DNA of 64,000 bases from Macrostomum lignano. Taxonomy: Eukaryota. This document shows, one piece after another, positions 21,361-59,500 of the stretch. The stretch's first letter is position 1. Each line of letters begins with the position of its first letter. The notes under the pieces are model-generated. The model was not told where the DNA came from. It ran no database searches and saw nothing but the letters and a program-made list of their open reading frames with translations. The DNA lies in the NCBI GenBank assembly GCA_002269645.1, contig NIVC01003997.1:1-64000 (forward strand), in the 5' to 3' direction. A program made the position numbers and the translations under genes.

Positions 21361-22799
21361 ATGAACATCTTTCGCCTCATTGGCGACATGAGCCATCTGG
21401 CTGCTATTCTGATCTTGCTGGCCAAAATCTGGCAAACTAGATCTGTCAGCGGGATATCAGGCAAATCTCAAGTGCTGTTTGGTCTGGTGTTTGTAACTCG
21501 CTATCTGGATTTGTTCACCAGCTTTGTGTCCATCTACAACAGCGTTATGAAGGTGAGATTAGAGCAGTCAGGTGTGATCCTTAGCTCACTGCTGCCCCCT
21601 CCCTCAGCTCACTGTTATTCTCTCCTTCAGGTCACTTCTATCCCCTCCTTCAGGTCACTGCTATCCCCTCCTTCAGGTCACTTCTTTCCCCTCCTTCAGG
21701 TCACTTCTATCCCCTCCTTCAGGTCACTTCTATCCCCTCCTTCAGGTCACTTCCATCCCCTCCTTCAGGTCACTGCTATCCTCTCCTTCAGGTCACTTCT
21801 ATCCCCTCCTTCAGGTCACTTCTATCCCCTCCTTCAGGTCACTTCTATCCCCTCCTTCAGGTCACTGCTATCCTCTCCTTCAGGTCACTTCTATCCCCTC
21901 CTTCAGGTCACTTCTATCCCCTCCCTCAGCTCACTGCTGCCCTCTCCCTCAGCTCACTGTTATCCTCTCCTTCAGGTCACTTCTATCCCCTCCTTCATGT
22001 CACTGCTATCCCCTCCTTCAGGTCACTTCTATCCCCTCCTTCAGGTCACTGCTATCCCCTCCTTCAGGTCACTTCTATCCCCTCCTTCAGGTCACTGCTA
22101 TCCCCTCCTTCAGGTCACTTCTATCCCCTCCTTCAGGTCACTGCTATCCCCTCCTTCAGGTCACTGCTATCCCCTCCTTCAGGTCACTTCTATCCCCCCC
22201 CCCTCCTTCAGGTCACTGCTGCCCCCTCCCTCAGCTCACTGCTGCCCCCTCCCTCAGCTCACTGTTATCCACTCCTTCAGATCACTGCAATCCCATTTTG
22301 GCTAAAATTCAAGAACTCAACCTTTTCTTACGCACCAAAATATCCCAAACAGATAGTGTTCATCTTTGCCACCTGGCTAACCGTGTCCCTAATCTATTGG
22401 AAATTCCGTTCCACTTACGACGGCAATCACGACACGTTTCGAGCCGAACTACTAGTAGTAGTCTCCGCCGGCCTATCCGTGCTATTGAACCACCAGCTGG
22501 CCCCGCTGGAGGTGCTGTGGACTTTCAGCATCTACCTGGAGTCCGTGGCCATCCTGCCGCAGCTGTTTCTCATTAGCAAAACTGGGTCGGCAGACACCAT
22601 CACGTCTCACTACCTGTTCGGCCTGGGCTCCTACCGGGCTTTCTACATACTGAACTGGATCTACCGCTACATGGTTGAGGACTTCTTCGATCCTATCGCC
22701 GTGGTGGCTGGCTGCGTTCAGACCATCCTGTATGCCGACTTCTTCTATATCTACGTGACCAAAGTGGTTCGCGGAAAATCCACTCAGATTGAAGTTTAG
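21361..22799 (+). CDS. KDELR: ER lumen protein-retaining receptor (KDEL receptor/ERD2), 212 aa. Exons 21361-21552, 22353-22799
   Basis: [16 protein letters not shown]...[20 protein letters not shown]...YNSVMK|IVFI...[10 protein letters not shown]...[17 protein letters not shown]...[24 protein letters not shown]. Phase-0 GT-AG intron; full length. Confidence 0.98.
21570..22285. repeat. 23-bp minisatellite (CAGGTCACTGCTATCCCCTCCTT) filling the KDELR intron
   Basis: Directly visible. Confidence 0.95.
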
Positions 22800-29839: not shown

Positions 29840-36244
<6,405 letters not shown>

Positions 36245-36564
36245 TCGAGCAGCGGTGTATCTTTCTTGGAAAAGCGAACCGGTCAAGCTAGGATTTCTCA
36301 ATGCGGGTATTGCAACAAGAAATTTAATCCCAGGATTTTTTGCGGCTTTGGTAGCCATTCCGACCACCCCGCGGCCCGCCTCATCCTTAGGGAAAAAATT
36401 GCTCAGCCAATGAAAAGCAAGCGAGTTCTCGGCCGACAGCCAATGGGAGTTTGAGAGCGGGAGGGGATTATTCACATTTGGGAAAGTTTGATTCCTGTCC
36501 TAAATAGAGTTCCAGCGAAACTGTGAGACTTGACTGGGGTGGTTTCAAATGGATAGAATGTCAA

Positions 36565-37100
36565 TGGCGGGTGTAGATTGCGAGCTTGGAGGGTGTGGAT
36601 TGGTGGGTGTGGAGGGTGTGGATTGGTGGGTGTGGAGGGTGTGAATTGGTGGGTGTGGAGGGTGTAGATTGGCGGGTTTGGAGGGTGTAGATTGGTGGGT
36701 GTGGAGGGTGTAGATTGGCGGGTTTGGAGGGTGTTGATTGGTGGGTGTGGAGGGTGTAGATTGGCGGGTTTGGAGGGTGTAGATTGGCGGGTGTAGAGGG
36801 TGTAGATTGGCGGGTTTGGAGGGTGTAGATTGGCAATTGTGGAGGGTGTGGAAGGTGTAGATTGGCGGGTGGGGAGGGTATAGATTGGCGGGTGTGAAAG
36901 GTGTAGACTGTGGAAGGTGTAGACTGTGGAAGGTGTAGACTGTGGAAGGTGTAGACTGTGGAAGGTGTAGACTGGCGGGTTTGTAGGGTGTAGATTGGCG
37001 GGTTTGGAAGGTGTAGATCGGCGGGTGTGGGGTGTAGATCGGCGGGTGTGGGGTGTAGATTGGAGAGTGTGAAGGGTGTAGACTGTAGGGTTTGGAGGGT
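36565..37100. repeat. 23-bp G-rich minisatellite (GGAGGGTGTAGATTGGCGGGTTT) upstream of Lhx2/9
   Basis: Directly visible. Confidence 0.92.
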
Positions 37101-37702
37101 AAAGTTTGGTGCGCATGAATGGTGCAAATAGGCTAGAAGATTAAGGTATTAATAAGCTGGTGATGGAGGTTGGAGTGGAGGCCTCATTAATTAAAAAACT
37201 GGACTTCACTGATCTATTGAATCACAACCTCGTTGATATATAGAATCGCAACCCCATTGATCTACAGAATCGGGCCCGCCCTCATTGATCTATGGAATCT
37301 ATGGATCTATGGATCTATGGATCTATGAAATCGCACCTCATTGATCTATATAACTGGGCCTCATTGATCTTTAGATTCGGACTTTACCAATCGCACTACT
37401 CATAAGTAGGATAGTTGGATTTGACAACCTGCATTAAGTAGCAATAATATATTTGTACTCATAGTAAAACACATCGAACGAAAGCGTTACATTTGGAGTG
37501 CAGGAATTTTCAGCATTGAATGCTGATCACAAATGAATAGAATTCTTAACGGCTCGTGGAATTTGCACAGAATTTTAAGTAATCGCAAAAATAGAAACTT
37601 TTAAAGCATATTTATTATAGCAGAATCTCTGGCTACCGATTTTGTTGCATGTTAACAAATTTTTCTTAAAAAATCATTAAACAAGTACCATGGTACATCA
37701 CA

Positions 37703-38068
37703 AGGGAGCCGAAGCCCAGTGATCTGGCGCGGCGCTTTGATGTGCCAGCGGCCCAGGCTCGATTCCAAGTGCAGCCACATTCATTTGGGGCTGAATTGGA
37801 ATCTCGGCTTGGCTCTGCTCGTGCAATTAACGCCATTTGAGGGCCAGCCCCTCAAGGCACAGTGAAGTGTACATGCCTAACGATAAATAAAGTTAGGGCC
37901 GCTGTACACTCCTGTGTGAGTGTGTGCCTGCGTACGTATCCGCGCGCTTGTATGCCTGCTCAGGGGAGTCGGCGGAATGGGCAGTAATGCCTCTCGCCGG
38001 TTGTGTGCCTATGTCGCTTAAAGTGCGCCAGGGTACACATGGCTCCCTTGTTCCAAAATAAAAAGAAA
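37703..38068 (+). mobile_element. tRNA-derived SINE, copy 1
   Basis: About 330 bp of high similarity to 46961-47310; B box GGCTCGATTCC at 37756-37766, degenerate A box, A-rich tail. Confidence 0.85.
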
Positions 38069-38282
38069 TGGTTTATAGCAAACTTAGCAAAACAACAGCA
38101 ATAAATGAAAACACTGCACAAAGGCGAAAGGTAAGGGATAGGGGCAAACACAAGACAGGTGTGAACAGGCTGGCAAACAGAAATTTACAGGCAAGATTAG
38201 ACAGGCGCTACGCAATAATAAAGGACAAATTATTAATAGAAAAATTTCTAACAGTAACAGGCGAAAGAATTGTTAGGAGTTG

Positions 38283-39080
38283 CCATCTCATCAACCAGCC
38301 TCCATCTCATCAACCAGCCTCCTCCATCTCATCACCCAGCCTCCTCCATCTCATCACCCAGCCTCCTCCATCTCATCACCCAGCCTCCTCCATCTCATCA
38401 CCCAGCCTCCTCCATCTCATCACTCAGCCTCCATCTCATCACCCAGCCTCCTCCATCTCATCACCCAGCCTCCTCCATCTCATCACCCAGCCTCCTCCAT
38501 CTCATCACCCAGCCTCCTCCATCTCATCACCCAGCCTCCTCCATCTCATCACCCAGCCTCCTCCATCTCATCACCCAGCCTCCTCCATCTCATCACCCAG
38601 CCTCCTCCATCTCATCACTCAGCCTCCATCTCATCACCCAGCCTCCTCCATCTCATCACCCAGCCTCCTCCATCTCATCACTCAGCCTCCATCTCATCAC
38701 CCAGCCTCCTCCATCTCATCACCCAGCCTCCTCCATCTCATCACTCAGCCTCTTCCCCATCTCATCACTCAGCCTCTCCTCCATCTCATCACCCAGCCTC
38801 CTCCATCTCATCACTCAGCCTCTCCTCCATCTCATCACCCAGCCTCCTCCATCTCATCACTCAGCCTCTCCTCCATCTCATCACCCAGCCTCCTCCATCT
38901 TATCACCCAGCCTCCTCCATCTCATCACCCAGCCTCCTCCATCTCATCACTCAGCCTCTTCCCCATCTCATCACTCAGCCTCTCCTCCATCTCATCACCC
39001 AGCCTCCTCCATCTCATCACTCAGCCTCTTCCCCATCTCATCACTCAGCCTCCTCCATCTCATCACCCAGCCTCCGCCAT
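38283..39080. repeat. 22-bp minisatellite (CCATCTCATCACCCAGCCTCCT) beginning at the pLGIC stop codon
   Basis: Directly visible. Confidence 0.95.
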
Positions 39081-42000
39081 CATCCGGGCGCGATCCCTCG
39101 CCGCCCAGGCCAGATAGACTGTCCAATAGGCTGCCGCGGCCGCCGCGAAAGTCGACGCGAAGGCGACAAAAAAGACGACATCGGCGCACCGCCGCAACCG
39201 CCGCTTCCTGTCGGCGTTTGGCGGCACCGCCGGGCCGATGTAGCGCCTGACGGCTCGGGCCCAGGCCGTCTCGGTGCTGCGAGCCAGCTGACTGCCGCTC
39301 AGCAGCTCCCGGCCGCTACCGCCGCCGCCGCCGCTCTCAGTCGACAAGGATGCAGTCTCTTTCCCAGCCGCGTTGGAGAGCAGAGCGGCCACGGCGAGGG
39401 CCAGGGCTCGAGTCAGGCCGGCAAAGCAAAATAGCAGGCACAGATAGAACCAGGTGTCCAAGGCTCTGCTGCCAGCTCCATGGGGTATCACCTGGTGAGA
39501 ATTTTGGGTCGGCTGATGATTGTGTCAGTTACTTATGACGGTTACCTCAGGACAGGTTACCTCAGGACAGGTTACCTCAGGACAGGTTACCTCAGGACAA
39601 GTTACCTCAGGACAGGTTACCTCAGGACAGGTTACCTCAGGACAGGTTACCTCAGGACAGGTTACCTCAGGACAGGTTACCTCAGGACAGGTTACCTCAG
39701 GACAGGTTACCTCAGGACAGGTTACCTCAGGACAGGTTACCTCAGGACAGGTTACCTCAGGACAGGTTACCTCAGGACAGGTTACCTCAGGACAGGTTAC
39801 CTCAGGACAGGTTACCTCAGGACAGGTTACCTCAGGACAGGTTACCTCAGGACAGGTTACCTCAGGACAGGTTACCTCAGGACAGGTTACCTCAGGACAG
39901 GTTACCTCAGGACAGGTTACCTCAGGACAGGTTACCTCAGGACAGGTTACCTCAGGACAGGTTACCTCAGGACAGGTTACCTCAGGACAGGTTACCTCAG
40001 GACAGGTTACCTCAGGACAGGTTACCTCAGGACAGGTTACCTCAGGAGGACAGGTTAACCCAAGACTCATTGCCTAGGCCTTATTGAAGTCTTTCATTTA
40101 AAAAAATTCATAAAGGCATATTTGCTAAAACAAAGAAATTTATTTTAATATTCAAGAAAAAGTAAAGTAAACACCGGATTCTAATTAACTGTCGCCCCTT
40201 ATTGGCAACTGCTCACCTCCCCTGCATCGAATTTCATCCCGCTGTGGGAGCAGATCTTGGCTCAACTTTTTGTCTAATCTGGCCAATTAAAAACCCTGCT
40301 TTAAGGAAGTTCCAGCTTGTAAACAGTTTGATCTCGAACTCGTGACTCGCTGTTTCCTCTTCAGGTTTTTCTACGAAGAACTTAAAGTTCATTCGCAATG
40401 TACAAGGAAGTCTGTTGCGATTGAAAATGCAGAAATTAGCAGATCTCCTAACTCGTATTAAGTTCTGACCAGAGACAGACTAATCGACAATTTTTACGCA
40501 GTATTGCTTGGATTTTAATACCCACCATATTTTAATAATCCCACCCACCATAGTAGGATAATCTCACCCAATATAGTTGGATAATCTCACCCAATATAGT
40601 TGGATAATCTCACCCAATATAGTTGGATAATCTCACCCAATATAGTTGGATAATCTCACCCAATATAGTTGGATAATCTCACCCAATATAGTTGGATAAT
40701 CTCACCCAATATATCTAATAGTTGGATAATTTCACCCACCCTAGTTCGATAATCTCAACCAATATAGTTGGATAATCTCACCCAATATAGTTGGATAATC
40801 TCACCCAATATAGTTGGATAATCTCACCCATTATAGTTGGACAATCTCACCCAATATAGTTGGATAATCTCACCCAATATAGTTGGATAATCTCACCCAA
40901 TATAGTTGGATAATCTCACCCAATATAGTTGGATAATCTGACACACCCTTATAACCATGAGCTGAGCTGAACTGTGCGACTAATTCACCCAACAGACCCA
41001 AACAATAACTCAATATGCACCTAATAAGTACTCAAAATCAAAGTTCAAATTTGCTTTTAAACCGTTTCCATTTTAGGTAAAATGACAGATTCGTCCCGTT
41101 TTGAATAAAAAATCATTCTTCACAAGAGCAATCGACAACTATAGTAAAACAATTTTAATAAAAAGCAGAGGCGCTTAAACAAAAAGGCGTTTGTTTCCCG
41201 AGAATTTGCTATTGAATGGCGGGTGAAAATATTCTATATTTGGCCATACTGCTGGCTTGCCGGGCTGGAGGGTGAGAGGGAGAGAAGGAAGAGGCTGCAG
41301 ATGGGACCGTGTCGATCCGTGCGGTCTAAAAATAGCGACAAACCCTTCCACTTTTCTGCTCAGGCAGAAATTTCACTGAGACTGAAATTTAATCGAATTT
41401 CTCAGACTCTGGGTGAGGACTGGCTTAAGATTATTCCGGAGAGAAGTAACTGCAACTCTTCTGGTGAAAATCGGTCAGACACTCAGGTGAGACTGGGTCA
41501 GACACTCAGGTGAGACTGGGTCAGACACTCAGGTGAGACTGGGTCAGACACTCAGGTGAGAATCGGTGAGACACTCAGGTGAGAATGGGTCAGACACTCA
41601 GGTGAGAATCAGTGAGACACTCAGGTGAGAATCAGTGAGACTCTCAGGTGAGAATCAGTGAGACACTCGAGTGAGAATCAGTGAGACACTCAGGTGAGAA
41701 TCAGTGAGACACTCAGGTGAGAATTGGTGAGACACTCAGGTGAGAATCAGTGAGACTCTCAGGTGAGAATCAGTGAGACACTCAGGTGAGAATCAGTGAG
41801 ACACTCAGGTGAGAATCAGTGAGACTCTCAGGTGAGAATCAGTGAGACACTCGGGTGAGAATCAGTGAGACTCTCAGGTGAGAATCGGTGAGACACTCAG
41901 GTGAGAATCAGTGAGACAATCAGGTGAGAATCAGTGAGACTCTCAGGTGAGAATCAGTGAGACACTCAGGTGAGAATCAGTGAGACACTCAGGTGAGAAT

Positions 42001-44456
42001 CAGTGAGACTCTCAGGTGAGAATCAGTGAGACACTCGGGTGAGAATCAGTGAGACTCTCAGGTGAGAATCGGTGAGACACTCAGGTGAGAATCAGTGAGA
42101 CAATCAGGTGAGAATCAGTGAGACTCTCAGGTGAGAATCAGTGAGACACTCAGGTGAGAATCAGTGAGACTCTCAGGTGAGAATCAGTGAAACTCTCAGG
42201 TGAGAATCGGAGACAGAGCCAAGCCACACTCACCAGGTTCACAATGGTCCACAAGAACATTTGCCCAGCCAGACACACCAGAGGCACGGCTGTCTGCACA
42301 AGGGCGCTGCCGACTCCCAGCCTGACTGACAGCCACACAGTCAGCACCATAGCAGAAGTTGGGCCATAGACGGTGGTTACGTAATAGGCTGCGTCTCGCT
42401 TCAGCAGCACCCACAGCACTGACTGACGCAGCTTCAGGCCGTTCAGCGCCCATTCTGTGCCAACACGGTCTCCAAGGCCAACCGCTCGGCTGCCGTTGCT
42501 TAGCAACCAACGACGCTGTGCAATAATAGCAGTGTCATTGCCAATCGGGTTTGGTATTCTCAAATTGCTCATGTTTACGGCGCAGAGCTCGGTGTCCAGG
42601 GGGAACAGATGCAGCTGTGGTCGGAGGGGGCAGCTGGATTGTGGAATTCAGTGCGTATAGTGGGGTACCCGCTTCTTTACCTGTCTCACCCATTGTCTGC
42701 CTCTCTCCCTCTCCCTCTCCCTGTCTCCTCTCCTCTCTCTTTCTCTCTCTCCCCCTCTCTCTCTCTGTTCCCCTCTCATATCCCTCTCTCCCTCTCTCTC
42801 CCCTCTCTCCCTCTCTCCCTCTCTCCCTCTCTCCCTCTCTCCCTCTCTCCATCTCTCCCTCTCTCCCTCTCTCCCTCTCTCCCTCTCTCCCTCTCTCCCT
42901 CTCTCCCTGTCTCCTCTCCTCTCTCCCTCTCTCTCGCTCTCCCTCTCTCTCTCTCTCCCTCTCTCTCCCCTCTCTCCCTCTCTCCCTCTCTCCCTCTCTC
43001 CCTCTCTCCCTCTCTCCATCTCTCCCTGTCCCTCTCTCCCTGTCTCCTCTCCTCTCTCCCTCTCTCTCGCTCTCCCTCTCTCTCTCCCTCTCTCTCGCTC
43101 TCCCTCTCTCTCTCCCTCTCTCTCTGTCTCCCTCTCATATCCCTCTCTCCCTCTCTCCCTCTCTCCTCGTCTCCCTCTCATCTACATCTCTCTCTCTTTC
43201 TCTCTCTTTCTCCCTCTCTCTCTGTCTCCCTCTCATATCCCTCTTTCCCTTTGTCCCTCTCTCCCTGCCTCCCCCTCATTCCTCTCGCTTCCTTCTCATT
43301 CTCTTTCCTCTCACCTCTCCCATCCCACCCCTCTCCCTCTCTCACATCCAACTTCTCTCTCCCCCAACGGCCCCTTTCCCACACTCGGTTCCCTCACATT
43401 CAGGCGGCAGGCCACAGTGAGGCTGACAACTCCGGACCAGCTCGAACCGCCGGCTGCAGCAGCTGTCCAGCCGAGCCTCAGGCTAACGTTGATCGCGGTG
43501 AAATTCACTTTGTCCAAGGACTCCAGGCTAGCGACAATGCTGCCGCTGCTGACGAGGTTAACATGAAATTGCAATTATTTGAAGCAGGATTTCATAAGAA
43601 ATTTATTTTCCTTAAAGTGCTCTGCTTGGCATAAATGAAGGTCGCATACAGCGATTGTCTCAGGATAGGGATATCCTTAGGCAGATTCTGACAGACCATG
43701 GATTTCAGCCCATCTTAGCTCTCTTCTCTCCTACTCTGCCCTCTCTTACCCTCCCCACTCTTACTCTCCCCCCTCTTACCCTCCCCTCTTACCCTCCCCT
43801 CTTAACCTCCCCTCTCTTACCCTCCCCTCTTACCCTCCCCTCTTAACCTCCCCTCTCTTACCCTCCCCTCTTAACCTCCCCTCTCTTACCCTCCCCTCTT
43901 AACCTCCCCTCTCTTACCCTCCCCTCTTACCCTCCCCTCTTACCCTCCCCTCTTACCCTCCCCTCTTACCCTCCCCTCTTACCCTCCCCTCTCTTACCCT
44001 CCCCTCTCTTACTCTCCCCTCTCTTACTCTCCCCTCTCTTACCCTCCCCTCTCTTACTCTCCCCTCTCTTACCCTCCCCTCTTACCCTCCCCTCTTACCC
44101 TCCCCTCTTAACCTCCCCTCTCTTACCCTCCCCTCTCTTACCCTCCCCTCTCTTACTCTCCCTCTCTTACTCTCCCCTCTCTTACCCTCCCCTCTCTTAC
44201 TCTCCCCTCTCTTACTCTCCCCTCTCTTACTCTCCCCTCTTTTACTCTCCCCTCTCTTACCCTCCCCTCTCTTACTCTCCCCTCTCGGTCACACTCGCAC
44301 AGTGGTCACTGGACTTTCTATTCTTATAAAAGCTGCACACTCTGCCTGAGGGGTGGTTTGACTCTCCTTAATGACTTACTTTTCACCTGCAGAGCTGGCC
44401 ACAGCAGCCGCAGCAAGCAGTTGCAGAAAAATTACCGCAGCCTGGGCGAGTCCCAT
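39063..44456 (-). CDS. Divergent pentameric ligand-gated ion channel (Cys-loop/Pro-loop family) subunit. Confident exons: 39491-39063 (M2-M3 loop to M4) and about 42680-42234 (loop 7 to M2). Probable exons: about 43550-43400 (beta1-beta2) and 44456-44387 (signal peptide). 5' structure unresolved; one apparent +1 frameshift near 42630
   Basis: Signal-like [23 protein letters not shown]; [21 protein letters not shown]; GTPLY...[11 protein letters not shown] (FPxD loop); [25 protein letters not shown] (M1); [18 protein letters not shown] (M3); [12 protein letters not shown]...YWTVY (M4). The 42234/39491 junction is a clean phase-0 GT-AG. Confidence 0.8.
39539..40050. repeat. Near-perfect 15-bp minisatellite (CAGGTTACCTCAGGA), about 34 units
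   Basis: Directly visible; a single variant unit near 39600. Confidence 0.98.
40550..40940. repeat. 23-bp minisatellite (TTGGATAATCTCACCCAATATAG)
   Basis: Directly visible. Confidence 0.95.
41470..42210. repeat. 23-bp minisatellite (CAGGTGAGAATCAGTGAGACACT)
   Basis: Directly visible; abuts the pLGIC donor at 42233. Confidence 0.95.
42690..43370. repeat. Polypyrimidine (CT/CCT) low-complexity tract
   Basis: Directly visible. Confidence 0.95.
43720..44290. repeat. 12-14-bp C-rich minisatellite (CTCTTACCCTCCCC)
   Basis: Directly visible. Confidence 0.95.
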
Positions 44457-45224
44457 TGCATGCAGTGGCTGAGCGAGTGGCAGAAGCTGGCAGTTATCAA
44501 TGCTAGTAATATATACATGTAAAGTGCAGACGCTTGAATGAGCCTGACAAATGCCTAAATAAGGCATGGCCAGAGGAGGGGCATAAGCAGCAGGGACTCT
44601 GCCCCATCCTCAGCCTCCTATACTCAAGCTGTTGAGCTCCTATTGGATCTCCTAGAGGTGGATCAGGGGATTCTGGGGCTGACTACTCAGCCCCCCGATT
44701 GGTCCGGACAAAACAGCCAGTGGGTATTCGGTCATATTTTTAAACTGCAGGACAGAATGGGAATCCAAAACCCATCTGCTCAGAGAGAGATTACCGGACA
44801 GCAGGGGAGGATTAGCGGCCGCCGCTGCAGATGCGATGCGAAATTCGATATCACTAAATTGCCAGGTGTAGTGACAAAGACTTTGTGAAGACTGGGGTTT
44901 TTCAATTATTAAAGCTACGAGGTATAACAGAAACATGAAATCTGAGTAAACACTGAGTTTATTTGACTCTTTGCTCAAAGAATGTTCCGGAATTGTCCTG
45001 ATGTAGGATTTCTGTGAAGAGCGCATTGGCTGCGGGCTCTTGGCGGCAGGTCTATTTTTAAACAGGCGATACAACAAGAACAGAACAGCTTTAAGCAATT
45101 CAGCAGCAGAATTATTTATGAACAATTTTAAACGTGCTTAAACATACATCAGGGTCAATCGTTTGTGCGGCTTGACGGCAAAATTAGAAATTTCACAACA
45201 GGATATTCTAGTCTCTCAAACTGA

Positions 45225-45645
45225 ATTATCCCCAGATTCCCAAACCGGACATACCAGAATTCGAAACCGGACATCCCCAGATTCCCAAACCGGACATCCC
45301 AGATTACCAAACCGGACATCCCAGATTCCCAAACCGGACATCCCCAGATTCCCAAACCGGACATCCCAGATTACCAAACCGGACATCCCAGATTCCCAAA
45401 CCGGACATCCCCAGATTCCCAAACCGGACATCCCAGATTCCCAAACCGGACATCCCCAGATTCCCAAACCGGACATCCCCAGATTCCCAAACCGGACATC
45501 CCCAGATTCCCAAACCGGACATCCCAGATTCCCAAACCGGACATCCCCAGATTCCCAAACCGGACATCCCAGATTCCCAAACCGGACATCCCAGATTCCC
45601 AAACCGGATATCCCCAGATTCCCAAACTGGACATCCCAGATGCCT
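45225..45645. repeat. 22/23-bp minisatellite (CCAGATTCCCAAACCGGACATCC) just 3' of LAMP
   Basis: Directly visible. Confidence 0.95.
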
Positions 45646-45681
45646 AGAAACCCGGTGCAGTCCAATTTCTGGCTTCCGGCT

Positions 45682-47787
45682 TCACTCCATATTCGAATAG
45701 CGAGTCGCCTTGCCGAGCCGGGTGACCAGGTAGCCGGCCACGATGATCACCATGCTGACCCCGATGACCCCGGCGATGGCCAGGGCGACGATGCCAGTGC
45801 GGTGCCGCCTGGAGTCCGCCTCGCACAGAAAGGCTGCGAGCGGGGAGCGGGCGTCTGTATGAGATCTTGTGAGATCTATGTGAGATCTATGTAGGATCTA
45901 TATGAGATCTATGTAAGATCTATGTGAAATTTATGTGAGATCTATGTCAGATCTATATGAGATCTATATGAGATCTCCGTTGGATCTATATTAGATCTAT
46001 GTAAGATCTATGTGAAATCTATGTGAGATCTATCTGAGATCTATCTGAGATCTATATGCGATCTCTGTGAGATCTATGTAAGATCTCTGTGAGATCTATG
46101 TGAGATATATAAGAGATCTATATGAGATCTCTATGAGTATATATGTGATCTATTTGATATATATGTGAGATCTTGTGAGATCTATGGGAGATCTAAATGA
46201 GATCTATGTAAGATCTATGTGAGATCTATGTGAGATCTAAATGAGATCTATGTGAGATCTATATGATAAAATTGCGATCTATATAACTCTCATAGTCAAT
46301 CTACAGGTACATTGAACTTCTATCAACTTCATATGAAATTAATTGAAATATTTGTACAGTACATTTTAGATTCGAAAATGCACTCTTGATTAAAAAGGTA
46401 GCGTTGTATAAAATTTACACGCACTCCAGCCTACTACTGAGTAGAAATGCATCAACACTATAATCTGCTAAAACAACTCACCTCCATCGTGCGCCTTCTC
46501 CCGCCCGTCCGACTCGCTGAGCGCCGTCTCCAAGCGGACAGCTGGGAAATGGACCAGGGCGCCTTCGCCTGGCGCGCTTTTCAGATCGGCGCCGAGTCGG
46601 CGCCAGCGCAGCCGGATCTCCTCGGGAGAATTGCAGACGAAAGCGTTGCGAACTGGCGCAGCGAATAGCAGCAGAGTTCGCTCGGCCCTGGGCAGCCAGT
46701 ACTCAACAATGGGCGACTCGCCTGCGGTTGCAGTTGGGATTGAGCACGTTTGGAGTGCTGGGATGCCAGTTGGCTCAATGGGGAGTTGCTGAGATGCCAG
46801 TTGGCTCAATGGGGAGTTGCTGAGATGCCAGTTGGCTCAATGGGGAGTTGCTGAGATGCCAGTTGGCTCAATGGGGAGCTGCTGAGATGCCAGTTGGCTC
46901 AATGGGGAGTTGCTGAGATACCAGTTGGCTCAATGGGGAGTTGCTGAGATGCCCTGGCTAAAGGGAGGCCGTAGCCCAGTGGTCCAGCGCGGCGCTCTGA
47001 TGTGCCAGCGGCCCAGGCTCGATTCCAAGTGCAGTCACATTAATGTGGGTCTAAATTGGAATCTCGGCTTGGCTCTGCTCGTGCAATTAACGGCCTTGAG
47101 AGCCAACCCCCCAAGGCGCAGTGAAGTGTACATGCCTAACGATAATATAAAGTTAGGGCCGCTGTACACTCCTGTGTGAGTGTGTGCCTGTGCGTATGAC
47201 TGCGTACGTATCTGCGCGCTTGTGAGCCTGCTCTGGGGAGTCGGCGGAATGGGCAGTAATGCCTCTCGCCGGTTGTGCGACAATGTCGCTTAAAGTGCAC
47301 CAGGGTGCACTCAGCCGTTGTCTCTGATAAAAATAAATGCCATGTCTCGGATCCTGTTAATTTGATTCGCAAAACAGAAGTCCATGAGAAAAGAAGATTA
47401 ATTTTAAAAAATTAATTTTAAAAAAAAACTAAACTTTCATTGCAGCTAGTATACAGCAAGTCCCAGTCGCACAAACCCGACCCACCTTTCACAATGCTGG
47501 CATTGGCGAACACGGGGTCCCTCAGATCGGCGAGCAGGCGGAGGTCGCTAACGAAGCTGTAGGTGACTGTGGCCTGCGAATTTGCGGAGTGATGGTCAAT
47601 TCTACCGGCCGTGCAATGCTGCGTGCTACTATAAGTAGGAGAGAAATCATCAAAAATATTTTTGTCTTGTAACTTCTTACCGGCGAGACTTGGGTCCATA
47701 CGTTGTCGAATACCTGAGGAATTTCAATTGTTAGATTGATTTTGGTTGATTTTGGTCTGCCTGTCTGTCTGTCTGTCTGTCTGTCTC

Positions 47788-47853
<66 letters not shown>

Positions 47854-48550
47854 CCCAGCCCTCACCCGCTCCCGAAAGCGCATCTCGAGCCGCAGGCGGC
47901 CGTCGGCCCAGGCCACCTCCAGCCTGGCAGTCCGATTGCCGCAGTCGCCCTCAACTCGACTGCCGTTAGACGCCGAGGGCAGCGAGACCACCGCTGTGCA
48001 GACGCCCTCTGGCTTGTCGTCTTCCGCCCGGCGGCAGGGGTAGGGCAGCGAGAAGGCCGCCCCGGAGAGGTCGGCGACCACGCAGGGCCGCTCGGAGCTG
48101 CTGGAGTTGCCGGACGGGAAAACCCGGAACTCGCTGGCGCCGGCTCGGGTTACCAGGCCGGCTGCAGGGGCGAGGATGGCGCTGCGTAAGAGAGGCTTTC
48201 AGGCACTGAGACAGACACTGAGACAGGCGCTGAGACAGACACTGAGACAGACGCTGAGACAGATACTCAGACAGGCACTGAGACAGATACTCAGACAGGC
48301 ACTGAGACAGACACTGAGACAGACACTGAGACAGATACTCAGACAGGCACTGAGACAGACACTGGAAGACACTAAGACAGACACTGAGACAGACACTGAG
48401 ACAGACACTGAGACAGACACTGAGACAGACACTGGGACAGAAACGCACAAAGACAAAGACAATCAGGCGGGCAGACCATATCATTTGCTCACAGCTCAAG
48501 ACACTCAGGGCGATGCCAGTCGCCAACACTGAGACGCTGGTGAACTTCAT
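45682..48550 (-). CDS. Single-domain LAMP family type I membrane glycoprotein (LAMP5/UNC-46-like), about 288 aa. Exons (minus) 48550-48493, 48161-47866, 47713-47681, 47573-47486, 46721-46482, 45833-45682
   Basis: Signal peptide MKFTSVSVLATGIALSVLSS; LAMP fold CVVADL...F..PY...VVSLP...VEGDC...LEVAW...LEMRF; W..V..TVTY; FANA; FAAPVRNAFVC..EEIRL; VHFPAVRLE; FLCEAD; then a TM helix and a short tail ending RYSNME (YxxPhi). Exon lengths sum to 867 nt with consistent phases. Confidence 0.85.
45860..46270. repeat. Degenerate 11-bp minisatellite (GAGATCTATGT), last LAMP intron
   Basis: Directly visible. Confidence 0.92.
46740..46955. repeat. 31-bp minisatellite (GTTGGCTCAATGGGGAGTTGCTGAGATGCCA), LAMP intron
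   Basis: Directly visible; ends where SINE copy 2 begins. Confidence 0.93.
46961..47338 (+). mobile_element. tRNA-derived SINE, copy 2 (antisense in a LAMP intron)
   Basis: A box TAGCCCAGTGG (46972-46982), B box GGCTCGATTCC (47016-47026), body shared with 37703-38040, A-rich tail. Confidence 0.87.
47755..47852. repeat. (GTCT)n microsatellite in the 152-nt LAMP intron
   Basis: Directly visible. Confidence 0.95.
48200..48445. repeat. 12-bp minisatellite (GAGACAGACACT), LAMP intron 1
   Basis: Directly visible. Confidence 0.93.
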
Positions 48551-49171
48551 CGGAGCGCGATGGATGAGTAGAAACTGCGCGTCAGTCAGTGAGTTGCCAA
48601 TACGAGCCAAGTCATGCGGCAGCTGCAGGCGACAAGCTAAATTTCTATCAGAGTCTTGGCCTTTTCCTATGCTGCCTGAGCATGGGGGGAGACTGGGGAG
48701 GCTGGAGTGGATGTCGTGGGGACAGAGAGAAGAGTGGACGAGAAGCTGGTTTTTATCGATCGATTTTTTGGCCGCGTGAGAGGAGGCGGGCGAGAATTTC
48801 GGGTTTGGAGGGGCGGCAGAACGGGAAGTGGGAAGGAGGCGAGAGGAGGTTCTGGTTGCTGGGGGTCGCACAGGAAGAGCGGGAAATCAGCTCCAGTTTC
48901 TCCCTCCGGGCCCGTATGAACGATTCTCCTTATTGCAGCCAATCAACTACAAAACTCACTTCTTCCTTCCTGTCTTCCCTAACCCCCTGCTCCTCTTCTG
49001 TCCCTCTCCCTGCCTGTCCCCGACTGTCAGAGCCGTGCACAAATTTCTTATCCTACAGACGGAGAACCAAGCTGTAACTGCACTCTGAGTAACTACTTGA
49101 GTGATTTAAACTATTTCGGGATTTTACAATGAAGAGCGTCGCTATTGGACTTGAGCTGAGAGAGATGGGTG

Positions 49172-49970: not shown

Positions 49971-50812
49971 ACTGTTGTGCACTGTGTTAGATGCCTTGTT
50001 CGTTCACTGATCATTCTAATCAAAGTCGCTAAGGGCGGTAAACTAAAGTAATATTTCATTTTCACTTAAAACTTAAAAAATTGCCTTAAAAATAACTTAA
50101 GAAGTTAGTGCCTTATAGTTAAGAAGGTCAAGAGTTCATTCAAGAAGCAAGTAATTCTTTTAAATATCAGATTGAACAATCAAAGCAGAGTGAATTTACA
50201 ACGTGGTGGCACATTTATTTTGGTTTTGCATCGAGAGCATGTTTACAGATTACATCGCAGTCAAGGTTTTGATATCCACTCACAAGAGTTCTTCCAACGT
50301 GCCAACGGACCTTAGTAATAAGGGACCATTTTAAAACAAACAAAGTAATTAAGAGCGCCTATACCTCGCGAATGCATAGCAATGTACACTGACAGGGAAT
50401 GTACATCTCCAGTCCTCATATGGCTAGTGATATGTACAGCTTGTGTGTACGCTGGCTGGGGGGGTACGAGTAGTCAAACCAACCCCCCAACCCTTCCAGT
50501 TCCTGTTCAGCCAATGAGAGCTCGCGAATCAGAATGCACGTAGAGAGCCTCCTCGAACAGAGTCGTAAAATTTTATTTACTTCATTTGTTTCACTGCCGT
50601 GGACCGGTTGTGGGTGCCAGTCTATAATTAGCCGCGACAACGTGCCCAGGGCTGCCTACCCTCCCGCCTAACCCTGTGAATCTGCTTTCCGCTCCGCAAG
50701 ACTTTCATCGACTCTCTCTAATCAGTCAGCTGATAAGAAAGAAGAATTGACTTTAAATACAAGCTGAACTCGACTCAACTATACAGCCTATAGTTAGAGC
50801 AGAGTTTTGATT

Positions 50813-53376
50813 ATGGCAAAGCAAATTTTAACCAAACAGATTTTGCTTGTAGTCTTACTAAGCTTGCTGATACCCAGCAGCTGGGAAGCCCTGACACTAC
50901 CTTGGGAGACTACAGCTCAAACCCTTGATCCCACACTGACTCGGCCTGCTGCTGCTGCTGACTCAAATAGGCTCCTGCTCAGAGACATCAGCGGCAGCCT
51001 CGAGGTGCCGACCAGGTGCTATTCTGACTCCAGCCAGTGCCAGGTCTACGGCGACTGCTGCCAGTCTGCGGCAGAAATCCCGGATCCCGTCTCGCACAGA
51101 TCCGCCCGATTCACCTGCCTGCCAATTGAGCCGCTCAGGCCTGACGGGGAGGCGTCTGATGCGGCCCGCGCCACCGACTGCTGCCAGCTGCAGAGGCCAG
51201 CGGCTCTGGCCGTGTCTGCCTGCCCAGCCGCCTCCAGCGGCTCCATCAACGATGCTGTCGCTGCGGCTGCAGCTGCCGCCGCCGATCCCAGAGATGTCGA
51301 AGCGTGCGGCAACTTCAACACCGATGAAGGCTTCCGCCGGTTGACTCTGTCATCGATCCCCGTGTTCGGTCCCGACGGCGTGCTGTACCGCAGCGTCCAC
51401 TGTCTCCGCTGCCACCGGCCACCGCTGTCAGAACCCATCAGTCAGGACAGGTTCCTGACTAACCTGACAGTCCGCTGCCAGAATCCAGAGGATTACGTCG
51501 GCAGAAATGCCAGCGCCTGGCAGGGCGAGCTGATGCGGCTGCTGCTGAGCGGGGGCAGCCTACCCAGGCGCTGCCACCTGGCGTTCCGGGTTCAGGAGCG
51601 GCTGGTGCACCGCTGCTACGCGGGGCTGCCGCAACTGCACACAGCCGGCGGTGAGAAGTCGCCCAGCGGGGACTGCCTCACCGGCGGCACCAGCTATGCG
51701 TTCTCGGCGGCGCAGTGTCGGGTCTACCGCAATTCCGCCTGCGCCAAGGATCCGGCCGACGGCGAGCCGCAACTCCAGCCTGACTGGCTGCGCTCCCAGT
51801 GCGCCGGCGGCAGCTCCGGAATCCTCACTCAGTCCAATCGCGAGTCGTTCAGCGTCCGGCCGAGGCCCAGCCTGTTGGACTCCGTGTTCAACTTCAATTT
51901 GGATCCGAGACTGCTGGCCGGTCAACTGGCTGCAATGTCCACCGAGTCGCCGGCTGCTGACGGTCAGCTGCGAGATAGCAAGAACGAGTCCAGTTCTGGC
52001 GACAGCCCCGGCAACGTCACGGAGGAGGCTGCGTCGGGGCGAGGAGGACCTGCGTCGGCTGCTGGCTTGGCTGATTGGACCGACTGGGCTACAATGGCGG
52101 CTCAGGCAGCCTCGGCCGTTGCGGTTGGTGTCACTGTGGGATCCTCATGCCCTTGAACTTCCCAGATCCCAAGCCTTTCTGCAAATGCGAGTATCCGTGC
52201 TCTGACCCAATCCTGTAAACTTCTGAGCAATCAGTCTGTAAACTCCTGAGAAATCAGTCTGTAAACTTCTGAGAAATCAGTCTGTAAACTTCTGAGAAAT
52301 CAGTCTGTAAACTCCTGAGAAATCAGTCTGTAAACTCCTGAGAAATCAGTCTGTAACTTCTCAGATCTGAAGTGCAGTGCATGTCCTGCGAACCCTACCC
52401 AATATCCTACCCAACGCAGGCCCTCAGCCTCACCTGCCTGTACCTGAGCCGCCGCCGTCTGCGCAATCGCTCCGGCCTCCTCTTAGTGTCGCACGCGCTC
52501 AGCCTGGCCGCGGTGAACATTCTCTCCCTCGTCGAGGCCGCCATCGCCGCGGCCTCCTCCGGCGATGTCAGCGGCTCGCCCTGGACCTGCCTGCTGGCCC
52601 TGTTCTGCATGGACGCCGGGTTCACCTGGGCTGGCCTGTTCGGCGTTGACCTGCTGCGCACCCTCACCAACCTGCTGGCCAGGCCGTCAGCGCCATCCAG
52701 GCGCTACGCCCGGTTCGCCGCCGTCGGCTGGGGCCTCCCGGCTGTCCCCGCCGCCGTGGCCGCCGGCCTGCACTTTGGCGACAGTCCCGCCCTGTTTGAC
52801 GCCAAGTCCTGCGGCCTGCCGGAGACCTCGGCAACGACGGCTGTGGCGGCGGCCTGCCGGGTTGGCCTGGCCTTCGCGCCCTGGGCCCTGGCGCTGGCCT
52901 TCAATGTCGCCTGCCTGATCGGCGTGGCCGCCTGCCTCGGACGGGCCGCCAGCCAGGCCCCGGCGTTCGAGCACCGATCGACCGGCGGTGGCCGATGGTC
53001 GAAGCGCCTCAACGGCCGGGCGCGCCGGACGCTCCGCAGGACGATGCTGACCGCCGGCCGGGTCTCTGCAGTGCTCGGCGTGGCCTGGCTGCCCTACTGC
53101 TGCCTCATCCTGGCCGGATTCGACGACCCGGCATCCGGGGTGTACATCGCTGCCAGGCTGCTCACCGACCTGCACGGCTGCCTGCTGCTGGCGGCCTTCG
53201 CCCGGCTCAGGCACTGCCGCCGGCTGGCTACTCAGCTTAGCGGCTGCAAGTGGCGGCACAGCGCCGCAGGCTCCTCCCTGGGCTCGTCATCCAAGTCCTC
53301 CTCCGCCGCGGCCTCCAAAGGTCGAAGCACTTCCTCGACTGCGGCCGGCGTGTCGGGTGGCGCGTCATCTCGGTGA
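50813..53376 (+). CDS. Class B (secretin/adhesion/Methuselah-like) 7TM receptor with an N-terminal somatomedin-B-like and Cys-rich ectodomain. Exons 50813-52123 (alternative donor at 52135) and 52420-53376
   Basis: Signal peptide; CYSDSSQCQVYGDCC (SMB-like); PVFGPDGVLYRSVHCLRC; seven hydrophobic segments with LRNRSG after TM1, WAGLFGVDLLRT in TM3, GWGLP in TM4, an ECL2 Cys, LGVAWL in TM6 and LHGCLL in TM7; Ser-rich tail. Confidence 0.82.
52215..52360. repeat. 23-bp minisatellite (TCAGTCTGTAAACTTCTGAGAAA), GPCR intron
   Basis: Directly visible. Confidence 0.92.
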
Positions 53377-56560: not shown

Positions 56561-59500
56561 TCACTTCTTCCTGCCCAGAGTGAAGAATCTCTTCTTGCCG
56601 GCCGATTCGCCCGCGCCAGGCGCCCCGGCGCCGCCAGGCGTGGCGCCAGACGGTCCGGCGCCGGCGCCCGCGGGCGGCAGAGTGGCAGCCCTGGCGGCGG
56701 TGGTCGGCGTGGCCCCGGCGGCGGCGTTGACCCGGGTGACCCAGTCGGTCATCTCGGCCTCGCTGCGGGCCTGGAACAGGTACTCGGCCCCGCTGGCCAT
56801 CTTCAGGCGGAACACGTGCGGCCGCTTGTTGTAATCCGGCGCCGGCGCGCTGCTGGCGCCGTTCAAGTCTAGCGGCGCCTCGTGATGATAGGTGTCCTGC
56901 GGCCGCTCCTTGGCGTAGCGCTGGTCTTTGTAGAAGCGCAGGTGCCCGGCCTCCAGCACAACGTAGCTGCGGAGGGGGGGGGGTGGGGAGACGTGAAATA
57001 AACGCGATTTCAGATTAGCGAATTAGCGAAAGCAGAAGACAAGCAACTCACATCTGCTGCCAGCTGCGGTGCTGGGCCTTCTTGCCAGCCTGGTCCCATT
57101 CGTGCTTGCGCGCCAGCGGACCCTCCAGCTTGGCGGCCGTGATTGGCGGCTGCTGCTGCTGCTGGGAAGTCGACGGCTTGGCGGTTGTTGAAGGCTGCTG
57201 CGGCTGCGAGGTCGGCGACACCTGGCTGGGGGCCTGCTGAGTCGGGCTGGCTGGCTTCTTCGGCGGCTTCGGGCTGGGCGGCGGCTGCGGCACCTGGGAG
57301 GCGACGGCCTCGGCCCGGCGACGGGACTTCTCCTCGGCCTTGGCCGCCCTGGCCTCCTCCGATTGGTCCTGCTCGCGCAGCTCGAAGGTAGTCTGGCGTT
57401 GCAGCGCTTGGAAGCGCTCCTCCTGCGACTGCGCCGCCTTCTCGAACGCCTCGTGCTGCCTGATGAGGGCCAGGGTCTCCTCCAGGCTGTCGCCAACGTG
57501 CCGGCTATTGAGGTGCGGCTCCTGGGCCAGCAGCCAGCCTTCCGCCACTGCAGCGTCCCGGGCGAATTGGTAAACCTGGGGGAGGCGGATGAAGTATCGA
57601 TCGCTTGTAAATGCCTTGTTGTGGACCAATCAGGGACTCCCACTGAGCTGTCGGGGGACTGACCAATCAGACTCCTACTGTGCTGGGGGCGCTGACCAAT
57701 CAGATAACCCCTGTGCTGGGGGGCGCTGACCAATCAGAGAATCCCAATTGTGCTGAGGGAGCTGACCAATCAGAGATTCCCAATTGTGCTGGGGGAGCTG
57801 ACCAATCAGAGAATCCCAATTGTGCTGAGGGAGCTGACCAATCAGAGAATCCCAATTGTGCTGAGGGAGCTGACCAATCAGAGAATCCCAATTGTGCTGA
57901 GGGAGCTGACCAATCAGAGAATCCCACTTGTGCTGAAGGAGCTAACCAATCAGAGAATCCCAATTGTGCTGAGGGAGCTAACCAATCAGAGAATCCCAAT
58001 TGTGCTGAGGGGAGCTGACTAATCAGAGAATCCCACTTGGGCTGGGGGAGCTGACCAATCAGAGAACCCCTGTGCTGGGGGAGCTGACCAGTCAGACTCC
58101 TACTGTGCTGGGGGAGCTGACCAATCAGACTCCTACTGTGCTGGGGGAGTTGACCAATCAGACTCCTACTGTGCTGGGGAGCTGACCAATCAGACTCCTA
58201 CTGTGCTGGGGGAGTTGACCAATCAGACTCCTACTGTGCTGGGGGAGCTGACCAATCAGACTCCTACTGTGCTGGGGGAGCTGACCAATCAGAGAACCCC
58301 TGTGCTGGGGGGAGCTGACCAATCAGAGAACCCCTGTGCTGGGGGAGCTGACCAATCAGAGAACCCCTGTGCTGGGGGAGCTGACCAATCAGACTCCTAC
58401 TGTGCTGGGGGAGTTGACCAATCAGACTCCTACTGTGCTGGGGGAGCTGACCAATCAGAGAACCCCACTTGTGCCAGGGGAGCTGACCAATGAAACCCTC
58501 ACCTCAAGCATCAGCTGGAACTGATCCCACTTCTCGTCCCAGGCGTCGTTCATGTCGAAGCGCTTGCCAATCACTTCCCGCAGTTTCTCCTGCACCACGT
58601 CTAGCTTGGGATGGCGGCGCTGAATGAGGGACTTGCCGAGGTTGCCGGCAATGGTGAAATTCTCATCCCTGGCGTCCATCTCGGCCTTGAGGTTCTTGTG
58701 CGAGTTCATCAACAGCTCGACGCCGGAGACGTCGCGCGGCTTCTCTTGACCAGCCATCTCGGCGTTGATGCCGTCCATCCACATGAGCAGGTCGCGGATC
58801 ATGTTCAAGAACCTGTGGAACTCGCCATTGTCGGCCAGATCGGCTTTGCGCTTCTGGCAGTGCAGGGTGAGCCGGTTCCAGGCGTCGATGACTTCGTCGC
58901 GTTTGTCGCGAATCAGCTGCTCCTTGTCGCCGCTGTAGGCCGGCAACAGGTCGTCGGCGTCGCGTTCGACGCCGTGCACGGCGGCTTCGAGAGTTTTCAA
59001 ATCGTGCTCGAAAGTGGCGTGCTTCCTGGTGTAGGCGTCGGCCGACTTGGCGTCCTTGCCAACGTCCTCCGGGATGGAGAGCTCCTTCTCTTCGATTCGG
59101 TCGAGGACGTCGTGACAGTCGCTGAGGAAACGATGGAAAGCGTGGGCGGCGGTGAGCAGCTGGGTGCGGGTGTCCATCAGCTCCAGCAGGTCGGCCCAGG
59201 CTTCGTTGACGCGGTCCTTCCATTCGGCGATCTCCGCCGAGCTGCGGTGGCCCTGGTCAATCAGGCTGTCAACGAACTGGTTGGCTGCGGCCACCTGAGG
59301 GATTGAGGGGGGGGGCAGGAGAGTCAGTCAGTCAGTCAGTCAGTCAGTCAGTCAGTCAATCAGTCAGTCAGTCAATCAGTCAGTCAGTCAGTCAGTCAAT
59401 CAGTCAGTCAGTCAGTCAGTCAATCAGTCAATCAGTCAATCAGTCAATCAGTCAATCAGTCAATCAGTCAATCAGTCAATCAGTCAATCAGTCAATCAGT

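Follow-up and report, generated by a model that had tools for sequence, protein, structure and literature searches.

What kind of protein is encoded by an exon that resembles a pentameric ligand-gated ion channel (pLGIC) of the anionic branch and has a pore and binding loops unlike those of the glycine and GABA-A receptors? The question is raised by a stretch of 64,000 nucleotides of the Macrostomum lignano genome, here called the window, in which a preliminary description had pointed to positions 42234-42680 as a highly non-canonical channel with an altered Cys-loop, a lost aromatic box and an atypical pore. The reading favoured here, held with moderate confidence, is that the flagged exon (E5; all features are listed in Table 1) is an internal exon of a maintained, derived subunit gene of the anionic branch, whose product would be non-classical, most likely silent or modulatory, and would begin with a signal-peptide exon of its own.

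Assignment of the exon to the anionic Cys-loop branch

On the minus strand the reading frame is open from 42647 to a consensus donor at 42234 (AAC CTG/gtgagt, the slash marking the exon boundary), and the span noted earlier consists of E5 together with 66 nt of intron. The product of E5 comprises the last 10 residues of the Cys-loop and its closing cysteine, strands beta7-beta10, the pre-M1 arginine, M1, and M2 as far as position 20'. When E5 was joined to the following exon, E6, a phmmer search of the PDB matched GlyR beta (E=5.5e-10), GABA-A gamma2 (~1e-6) and GluCl (3e-5), with matches to GABA-A gamma2, delta, pi and beta entries at E-values from 1e-6 to 1e-3. The significant true matches were all GlyR, GABA-A, GluCl or pHCl, and no cationic receptor appeared among the best 60.

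From the pre-M1 region through M3 the protein aligns to GlyR beta without gaps (segments TLRRQVGFYMMGVYAPT and ELPKVSYVKALDVW), the alignment being anchored by YGPT/YAPT, IP/LP and ALDTW/ALDVW. The M1 Trp and the M2-M3 Pro delimit 36 residues, likewise gapless against GlyR beta and with an M1-M2 linker of anionic-type length, in agreement with the anion-channel spacing that had been claimed. Within the same alignment the pre-M1 Arg (LLKRD), the M1 Pro (YGPT) and the M2-M3 Pro (VIPHG) fall opposite LRRQ, YAPT and ELPKV. The LFPLD of E5, which pairs with GlyR beta LFPMD, carries the [F/Y]-P-x-D motif of the loop tip, whose proline is 100% conserved in the superfamily (Jaiteh et al. 2016, Table 1, PMC4795631). 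Measured against that table, six of the seven superfamily-wide residues have secure counterparts, namely F, P and D in the Cys-loop, the Arg before M1, and the prolines of M1 and of the M2-M3 loop. The remaining one, an aromatic in beta9, may correspond to the Trp of GTEW, 18 residues before the pre-M1 Arg in a region outside any tool alignment; a second Trp (RRW) lies 37 residues before that Arg, and in GLIC, GABA-A beta3 and 5-HT3A the distance is 30-32 residues (PMC4795631). Four transmembrane (TM) segments are indicated by hydropathy peaks over M1-M2, M3 and M4 and by helices in a low-confidence AlphaFold2 model, and the extracellular domain (ECD) part holds five N-glycosylation sequons.

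E5 is almost certainly a pLGIC-derived coding exon, and the gene, as judged by sequence comparison, is an orphan and very derived subunit of the anionic Cys-loop branch. The phmmer matches and the gapless alignment from M1 to M3 bear out the branch assignment of the preliminary description. Its suggestion of orphan status also held: against 1.84 billion representative proteins E5 recovered its own gene model and two proteins with repeats of the transcription activator-like (TAL) effector type, judged spurious, and its own gene models were the sole relatives found among 5.8 billion clustered proteins.

TAL-effector-type repeats also arose in the structural search. The top PDB match was Hax3 (E=2.5e-10), composed of seven stretches of ~8 bits each, and the M2-M3 stretch (window 39400-42330, minus strand) was repeatedly matched to 34-residue repeats of this type. 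Homology to TAL effectors is regarded as spurious, an artefact of summing many stretches of ~8 bits over repeats.

A canonical Cys-loop by predicted splicing

In the preliminary description the Cys-loop was thought to be either Cys-less at its first position, once a C is removed from a run of five, or a contiguous C-x15-C loop. An in-frame stop at 42648-42650 lies upstream of E5, and the acceptor of the exon (...ccgaccacag/CTG CAT, at 42615, phase 0) stands directly before LHLFPLD. The first Cys-loop cysteine is found in a separate exon, E4, through which the HMMER alignment to GlyR beta passes, and whose donor is ~780 nt upstream of the E5 acceptor, with a CT microsatellite (42696-43343) between. 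Joining E4 (43398) to E5 (42614), both in phase 0, yields C-x13-C; the junction is a predicted one, and HMMER aligns 26 residues across it to GlyR beta. The donors of the gene (gtgagg and gtgagt) and its acceptors ending in cag match the splice motifs of M. lignano, GT[GA]AG and CAG (PMC8629364). On the conservation of intron positions among genes of anionic pLGICs the literature searched returned nothing. The loop is very probably a canonical C-x13-C, and its 'broken' appearance is due to read-through of the intron. The preliminary description had itself named a canonical loop made by different splicing as the outcome that would overturn its reading, and splice-site logic, phase and HMMER alignment all give that outcome: both cysteines are present after splicing, and the gene is not a Cys-less Pro-loop receptor.

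The same interval could be compared in three loci of assembly GCA_002269645.1, designated L001, L002 (the window) and L003; the paralogues of the window locus are on scaffolds NIVC01002667.1 and NIVC01001061.1. The C-run (42626-42630; G5 on the plus strand) belongs to the E5 acceptor's polypyrimidine tract and is C5 in the window and in L001, C4 in L003. Positions 42615-42680 are taken to be noncoding because this 1-nt indel is tolerated while the downstream exons are under purifying selection.

For a loop that is indeed non-canonical, whether Cys-less after a 1-nt correction of the C5 run or contiguous C-x15-C, it can be said that the C4 run of L003 leaves the Cys-less frame open, and that a 13-residue string read out of frame there shares 6/13 residues with the GABA-A beta6 strand. 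The frame is open in just one of the three loci, however, and lies inside an indel-polymorphic intron; the other two loci carry C5, and purifying selection persists downstream nonetheless. Six windows with 6/13 identities to that strand arise by chance in the 64 kb, and the string was rejected as a coding relic, being a chance match within intron sequence. For the C-x15-C version, splicing would have to use the phase-2 acceptor tccag/, and E4 offers no donor of fitting phase. We give a non-canonical loop next to no probability.

Purifying selection in three copies of the locus

M. lignano is a neopolyploid, and its assembly holds 180 Mb of duplicated blocks with at least 95% identity (PMC5704211, PMC10733133, PMC5730564). 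The layout of the gene is the same in the three loci, including a pair of 9-mers considered below. Over the 957 nt of E4-E6 there are 15 substituted sites, 13 of them synonymous and two nonsynonymous: two synonymous in E4, three synonymous in E5, and eight synonymous plus two nonsynonymous in E6. The window differs from L001 by seven synonymous changes and one nonsynonymous change (His to Tyr in IPHG), and from L003 by nine and one (Arg to Leu near the C-terminus). The sole exonic indel is a 3-nt in-frame insertion in E5 (IGND to IGNND, window vs L003), and the open reading frame (ORF) is intact in all three copies.

The ratio of nonsynonymous to synonymous differences per site (pN/pS) over E4-E6 is 0.04-0.056. 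Random placement of substitutions of the same classes gives 13 or more synonymous sites among 15 with P = 1e-4, and P remains <1e-3 under a CpG bias (8 CpG-associated sites) because CpG transitions are synonymous in just 39% of cases. The GC content of third codon positions is 0.76, vs 0.61 at first and 0.55 at second positions, and among 20,000 shuffles just one produced a 319-codon frame free of stops. Nearby unique non-exon sequence is 1.15% (L001) and 2.2% (L003) divergent and contains several indels. The gene is, with high confidence, under purifying selection. The three substitutions upstream of an internal Met (MSNL) are all synonymous, which weakly supports coding through E4. From E2 through the TM exons there are no differences among the copies; the background there is just 0.4-1%, and this is weak evidence that the upstream exons are constrained.

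These figures bear on the idea that E4-E6 are the decaying remnant of a pLGIC gene killed by an insertion of 3.96 kb. A relic would fit the absence of E4-E6 from the RNA-guided annotation, the degenerate pore and binding loops, the lack of a Pfam-level match and introns filled with minisatellites. It does not fit 13 synonymous vs two nonsynonymous changes (P ~1e-4), an ORF intact in all copies with its sole exonic indel in frame, or the retention of superfamily-conserved residues despite extreme divergence. A dN/dS near 1, with which the preliminary description had associated a pseudogene, is not what was found, pN/pS being ~0.05. The three-locus comparison, through its substitution pattern and intact ORFs, led us to reject a pseudogene or relic, which we consider very improbable.

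Divergence is not uniform along the locus. Across window positions 36480-49170 the divergence of the window from L001 and L003 climbs steadily from 0-0.9% near 49 kb to 5-7% near 37 kb, which suggests a gene-conversion or recombination boundary, or unlike histories of the two ends.

Pore and binding site

In the gapless GlyR beta alignment the pore reads Leu-Val-Gln from -2' to 0', with Pro at 4', Val at 6', Ala at 9' and Phe at 13'; the -2' Pro, -1' Ala, 0' Arg/Lys and 9' Leu are all missing. Across the family 0' is R/K in 79% and 9' is L in 75% (PMC4795631). The pore numbering is secure because the alignment from pre-M1 to M3 is gapless and anchored, and it reproduces the pore that had first been read from the sequence. 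Counting from these anchors, with a reference numbering that we take to be that of GlyR alpha1, GABA-A beta3 and nAChR alpha1, places Leu at the aromatic position of loop B (second Cys +7) and, if beta10 is ungapped, also at that of loop C (pre-M1 Arg -11). The loss of the loop B and loop C aromatics, also claimed earlier, thus stands under that assumed numbering.

A protein of this kind would retain the pentamer-forming scaffold and the gating interface between the ECD and the transmembrane domain. Assembled into a homopentamer, it would line its lumen with hydrophobic, uncharged residues, including a ring of Phe at 13', and would offer no classical orthosteric site; for these reasons it is unlikely to act alone as a transmitter-gated chloride channel. 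It would join other pLGIC subunits as a silent or modulatory partner, a role that is plausible from the sequence and somewhat short of probable. An orphan, possibly non-conducting or accessory subunit is the best functional guess; as alternatives the protein may be a receptor for a non-classical cue or may have a non-channel role.

Two halves of a ligand-binding domain

Exons for the N-terminal ligand-binding domain (LBD) lie 4-6 kb upstream of E5. In E2 the spacing of 45 residues between Y and W is, we assume, that of GlyR alpha1, and HMMER pairs the E2 segment EVAWADGRLRLEMRF with GlyR beta RQKWNDPRLKLPSDF. When E1-E3 are added, the alignment to GlyR beta becomes a single stretch through WADGRL (vs WNDPRL), FAN and the Cys-loop. 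In public models these exons belong to another transcript: A0A1I8HE12, PAA49015.1 and PAA72778.1 run through E1-E2-mini-E3 and then on to an immunoglobulin (Ig)-like and a TM exon, matching the window exons at 100% identity. The cluster of models of this type also holds PAA56074.1, and all three PAA entries come from the Mlig_3_7 annotation, for which RNA-seq data were processed with StringTie, TACO and TBONE (PMC5730564). The transcript of half an LBD with Ig and TM exons is RNA-supported, since the Mlig_3_7 models are RNA-seq guided. The Ig-like exon has no Pfam match, and the name 'Ig-like domain-containing protein' comes from UniProt. A join of E3 to E4 is absent from the public models found in homologue searches.

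Two further public entries touch these exons. A0A1I8HRX4, a 137-aa fragment of the N-terminal exons, is misnamed 'Integron gene cassette protein'; its sister entry A0A1I8HIJ8, under the name 'Neur_chan_LBD domain-containing protein', has no Pfam match in the current library.

A direct repeat of 9 bp, CAGCATTGT, marks the break between the two halves, one copy lying at E3's end and the other at the start of E4. The 9-mer occurs only at those two sites in the window, on either strand, the pair is present in 3/3 loci, and both copies read Ser-Ile-Val in the same frame. Between them lie 3,957 bp that contain the Ig-like exon, the TM/stop exon, a poly(A) signal and an ATG exon resembling a signal peptide. 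Removal of the 3,957 bp and one copy of the repeat in silico leaves a single continuous in-frame LBD exon. The segment resembles a piece of genomic DNA inserted with duplication of its target site, and on the favoured reading it would interrupt a formerly single LBD exon.

A single full-length gene could explain the same exons, E1-E2-(mini)-E3 being spliced also to E4-E6 to give ~445-466 aa, with the Ig/TM exons as an alternative 3' isoform. No ECD element is missing, and their order follows GlyR beta (WxDxRL, FAN, beta5-beta6, Cys-loop); at 455 aa the collinear model is as long as pLGICs typically are; E3's phase-1 donor can pair with the ctgcag/ acceptor at 43453 and keeps the product in frame; and the copies are without substitutions in the upstream LBD exons. 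The 43453 junction, however, deletes beta5 and leaves the interval from loop A to the first Cys ~16 residues short, whereas to keep beta5 splicing would have to use a weak donor, gtgaaa, with a gag/ acceptor, off the species motifs; moreover, the RNA-guided models join E3 to the Ig exon, and no public model joins it to E4. A full-length gene is on this evidence unlikely.

It is possible, and on balance doubtful, that the LBD exon was split by the 3.96-kb fragment and that both halves are selected in all subgenome copies, one as a half-LBD-Ig-TM protein and the other as a truncated subunit that would be silent or dominant-negative. Re-association of the truncated half with the tethered half-LBD would be the least likely outcome of such a split. 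Two selected genes whose products complement each other in this way would agree with a break exactly in the beta4-beta5 connection, a signal-peptide-like exon for each half and the conservation of both halves among copies. Conservation of the upstream exons stands weakly above background (0 and 3 differences, vs ~3 and ~8 expected), and to our knowledge a split, reassembling subunit has no precedent in pLGICs; we consider it highly improbable.

Start and end of the channel half

Downstream, E5 and E6 meet in phase 0, and the join TIVNL/VIPHG is also present in UniProt A0A1I8JQ25. That entry, named 'LIM zinc-binding domain-containing protein', is a fusion that begins at an internal Met in E5, continues through E6 and runs into a neighbouring LIM exon, passing the E6 stop through frameshift-type indels of an older assembly. 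The E6 stop codon is intact in 3/3 Mlig_3_7 loci.

Upstream, the proposed start is a candidate first exon resembling a signal peptide. Its donor is the only upstream one that fits in phase the cgtcag/ acceptor of E4 (43548), and the product would be 345 aa long. The ATG and the donor are conserved in 3/3 loci, and in L001 a competing phase-2 donor, located just past E3, is disrupted. On the favoured reading the mRNA would start at this exon and encode a subunit without beta1-beta4; an own 5' exon is preferred because the RNA-guided models splice E1-E3 to the Ig-like and TM exons. An N-truncated product with its own signal peptide is put forward tentatively, the case being nearly evenly balanced. 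Trans-splicing of the spliced leader onto E4 acceptors was also considered and set aside as speculative: the ATG that ends the leader would keep the frame only at the weak gag/ acceptor (43520). A literature search with the Mlig gene identifiers of the locus returned nothing.

Several results weigh against parts of the favoured reading. As to family membership, the HMMER comparison with Neur_chan_LBD and Neur_chan_memb that the preliminary description had proposed gave 14.2-16.5 bits for the assembled models on Neur_chan_LBD (PF02931), below the gathering cut-off of 26, and no match at E<=10 on Neur_chan_memb (PF02932). The ECD after the Cys-loop, searched alone, has no PDB match, and the single-sequence AlphaFold2 model is unreliable (predicted local distance difference test, 46); E5 alone has no Pfam match, and candidate upstream ORFs gave no usable one. 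The selection test covers shallow divergence only (1-4%, recent duplicates). As to the proposed history, a search of the 3.96-kb segment for terminal inverted repeats, transposon ends and transposon genes came up empty, so that the 'insertion' rests on the 9-bp repeat. As to the 5' end, the signal-peptide exon carries no constraint signal of its own (one synonymous, one nonsynonymous change), and an in-frame isoform of E3 spliced to the E4 acceptor at 43453 (445 aa, without the beta5 region) is equally phase-allowed; a subunit without beta1-beta4 may be unable to fold. Finally, no transcript or gene model covers E4-E6 in the RNA-guided Mlig_3_7 annotation at any of the three loci, and the sole public model, A0A1I8JQ25, has an internal Met as its start and runs on into the LIM gene; expression of these exons is putative.

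The locus and its neighbours

Every unique window segment that was compared is identical to M. lignano scaffold NIVC01003997.1 (GCA_002269645.1). The DNA is eukaryotic and rich in minisatellites; protein searches, too, point to M. lignano, a free-living flatworm, and the genes around the channel gene are of ordinary animal types. Arrays of minisatellites and microsatellites (period 2-31 nt) fill all introns and the 3' flank of the channel gene; their copy numbers vary across the three paralogous loci, and several of them give long spurious ORFs. The two LIM exons lie just downstream of the channel gene on the same strand, followed by poly-Ala/Gln-rich sequence, and are probably part of a LIM-homeobox-type gene, which is absent from the Mlig_3_7 annotation of the fetched loci.

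Table 1. Features of the 64,000-nt window (positions in the window; phases as predicted; slashes mark exon boundaries)
Feature	Position	Strand	Description
E1	48493-48550	minus	signal peptide MKFTSVSVLATGIALSVLS; in NCBI models PAA49015.1 and PAA72778.1
E2	47866-48161	minus	N-terminal LBD; Y...W 45 residues, then WADGRL (WxDxRL motif)
Mini-exon	47681-47713	minus	11 codons, VFDNVWTQVSP; in public models
E3	47486-47573	minus	LBD, loop A/beta4 region; ends LRDPVFANASIVK; donor AAAG/gtgggt, phase 1
9-bp direct repeat CAGCATTGT	47491-47499 and 43534-43542	minus	end of E3 and start of E4
Ig-like exon	46482-46721	minus	phase 1 to 1; E3 spliced onto it in public models
Terminal exon	45682-45833	minus	end of Ig-like part (AFLCEA), one TM helix, short tail, stop
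AATAAA	44963		~720 nt past the stop of the upstream gene, ~500 nt before the 44380-44456 exon
Candidate first exon	44380-44456	minus	signal-peptide-like; donor AA/gtaagt, phase 2
E4	43398-43548	minus	beta5-beta6 and first Cys-loop Cys; ends ...SLTVACRLN/gtgagg, phase 0
Possible acceptors of E4	43548; 43453; 43520		cgtcag/ (phase 2); ctgcag/ (phase 1); gag/ (phase 0)
Intron 3' end	42615-42680	minus	C-run, out-of-frame 13-residue string, stop 42648-42650
E5, flagged exon	42234-42614	minus	127 codons; acceptor cacag/, donor /gtgagt, both phase 0
E6	39063-39491	minus	M2-M3 loop (VIPHGAGS), M3, short Ala/Gly-rich intracellular loop, M4 (...YWTVYL), stop
LIM-domain exons, two	33092-33550, 36002-36475	minus	Pfam LIM, E=1e-11 to 1e-13
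KDEL (ER lumen protein retaining) receptor	21361-22799	plus	first intron with long repeat-encoded ORF
Secretin-family 7TM receptor	50807-53376	plus	755 aa in annotation
Beta-spectrin C-terminal exons	56561-62359	minus	spectrin-repeat and PH exons
Satellite arrays	38283-39081, 39540-40047, 40535-40939, 41463-42215, 42696-43343		
Satellite arrays (continued)	43726-44286, 45228-45641, 45860-46266, 46752-46953, 48200-48441		

Relation to known receptors

The closest sequence matches of the gene are GlyR beta and the GABA-A gamma, delta, pi and beta subunits (PDB 7mly_E, 6hug_C and others). It shares with them the C-x13-C loop and its [FY]PxD, the Arg ahead of M1, the Pro within M1 and, in M3, ALD[TV]W. 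The end of M4 is of the YWxxYL type, which we take to be a GlyR/GABA-A feature and which is GABA-A-like here. A Pro near the cytoplasmic end of M2 is found at 2' in GlyR beta and at 4' in the M. lignano gene. Unlike GlyR and GABA-A subunits, the gene has LVQ for the Pro-Ala-Arg filter, Ala for the 9' Leu, Val for the 6' Thr/Ser and Phe at 13'; its loops B and C are without the canonical aromatics, its intracellular loop is very short and Ala/Gly-rich, and its Pfam similarity is sub-threshold. A further difference is that the N-terminal half of its LBD may be on another polypeptide.

For the 345-aa model the closest precedent is CHRFAM7A (dup-alpha7), a human nicotinic chimera in which LBD exons are replaced by unrelated 5' exons and whose truncated subunit can enter pentamers and weaken their function. 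The truncation of the M. lignano gene is a predicted one. CHRFAM7A is also a recent extra copy beside an intact parent, whereas no intact parent or close paralogue was detected for the M. lignano gene, and, unlike in CHRFAM7A, the rest of the M. lignano protein is itself highly derived.

Receptors of the Cys-less 'Pro-loop' kind are orphan, uncharacterised invertebrate pLGICs with members in flatworms (Jaiteh et al. 2016, PMC4795631). The spliced M. lignano gene differs from them in having both cysteines and in its similarity to anionic Cys-loop receptors. The flatworm pLGIC survey of McCusker et al. deals with the same phylum, superfamily and anionic branch. That survey required complete predicted-proteome models with 3-5 TM segments and F/YPxD, and the gene was probably unscored, since the public models of the locus are split or fused.

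Implications

Orphan, derived pLGIC subunits are already known (PMC4795631), and M. lignano has GABA-A-like genes (PMC6881066). The gene would serve something other than classical fast inhibitory transmission, because it is selected despite the loss of the charge filter, the 9' Leu and the aromatic box. Invertebrate genomes often contain orphan subunits whose pores are non-canonical, and these are rarely studied. The public models at this locus are wrong or incomplete, through the LIM fusion and the 'integron cassette' misnomer, and family inventories drawn from those proteomes miss the gene. M. lignano is tractable to transgenesis, which makes the hypothesis directly testable. If the gene split is true, the locus would offer a natural, selected, N-truncated Cys-loop subunit outside primates and a clean exon-level gene fission by insertion.

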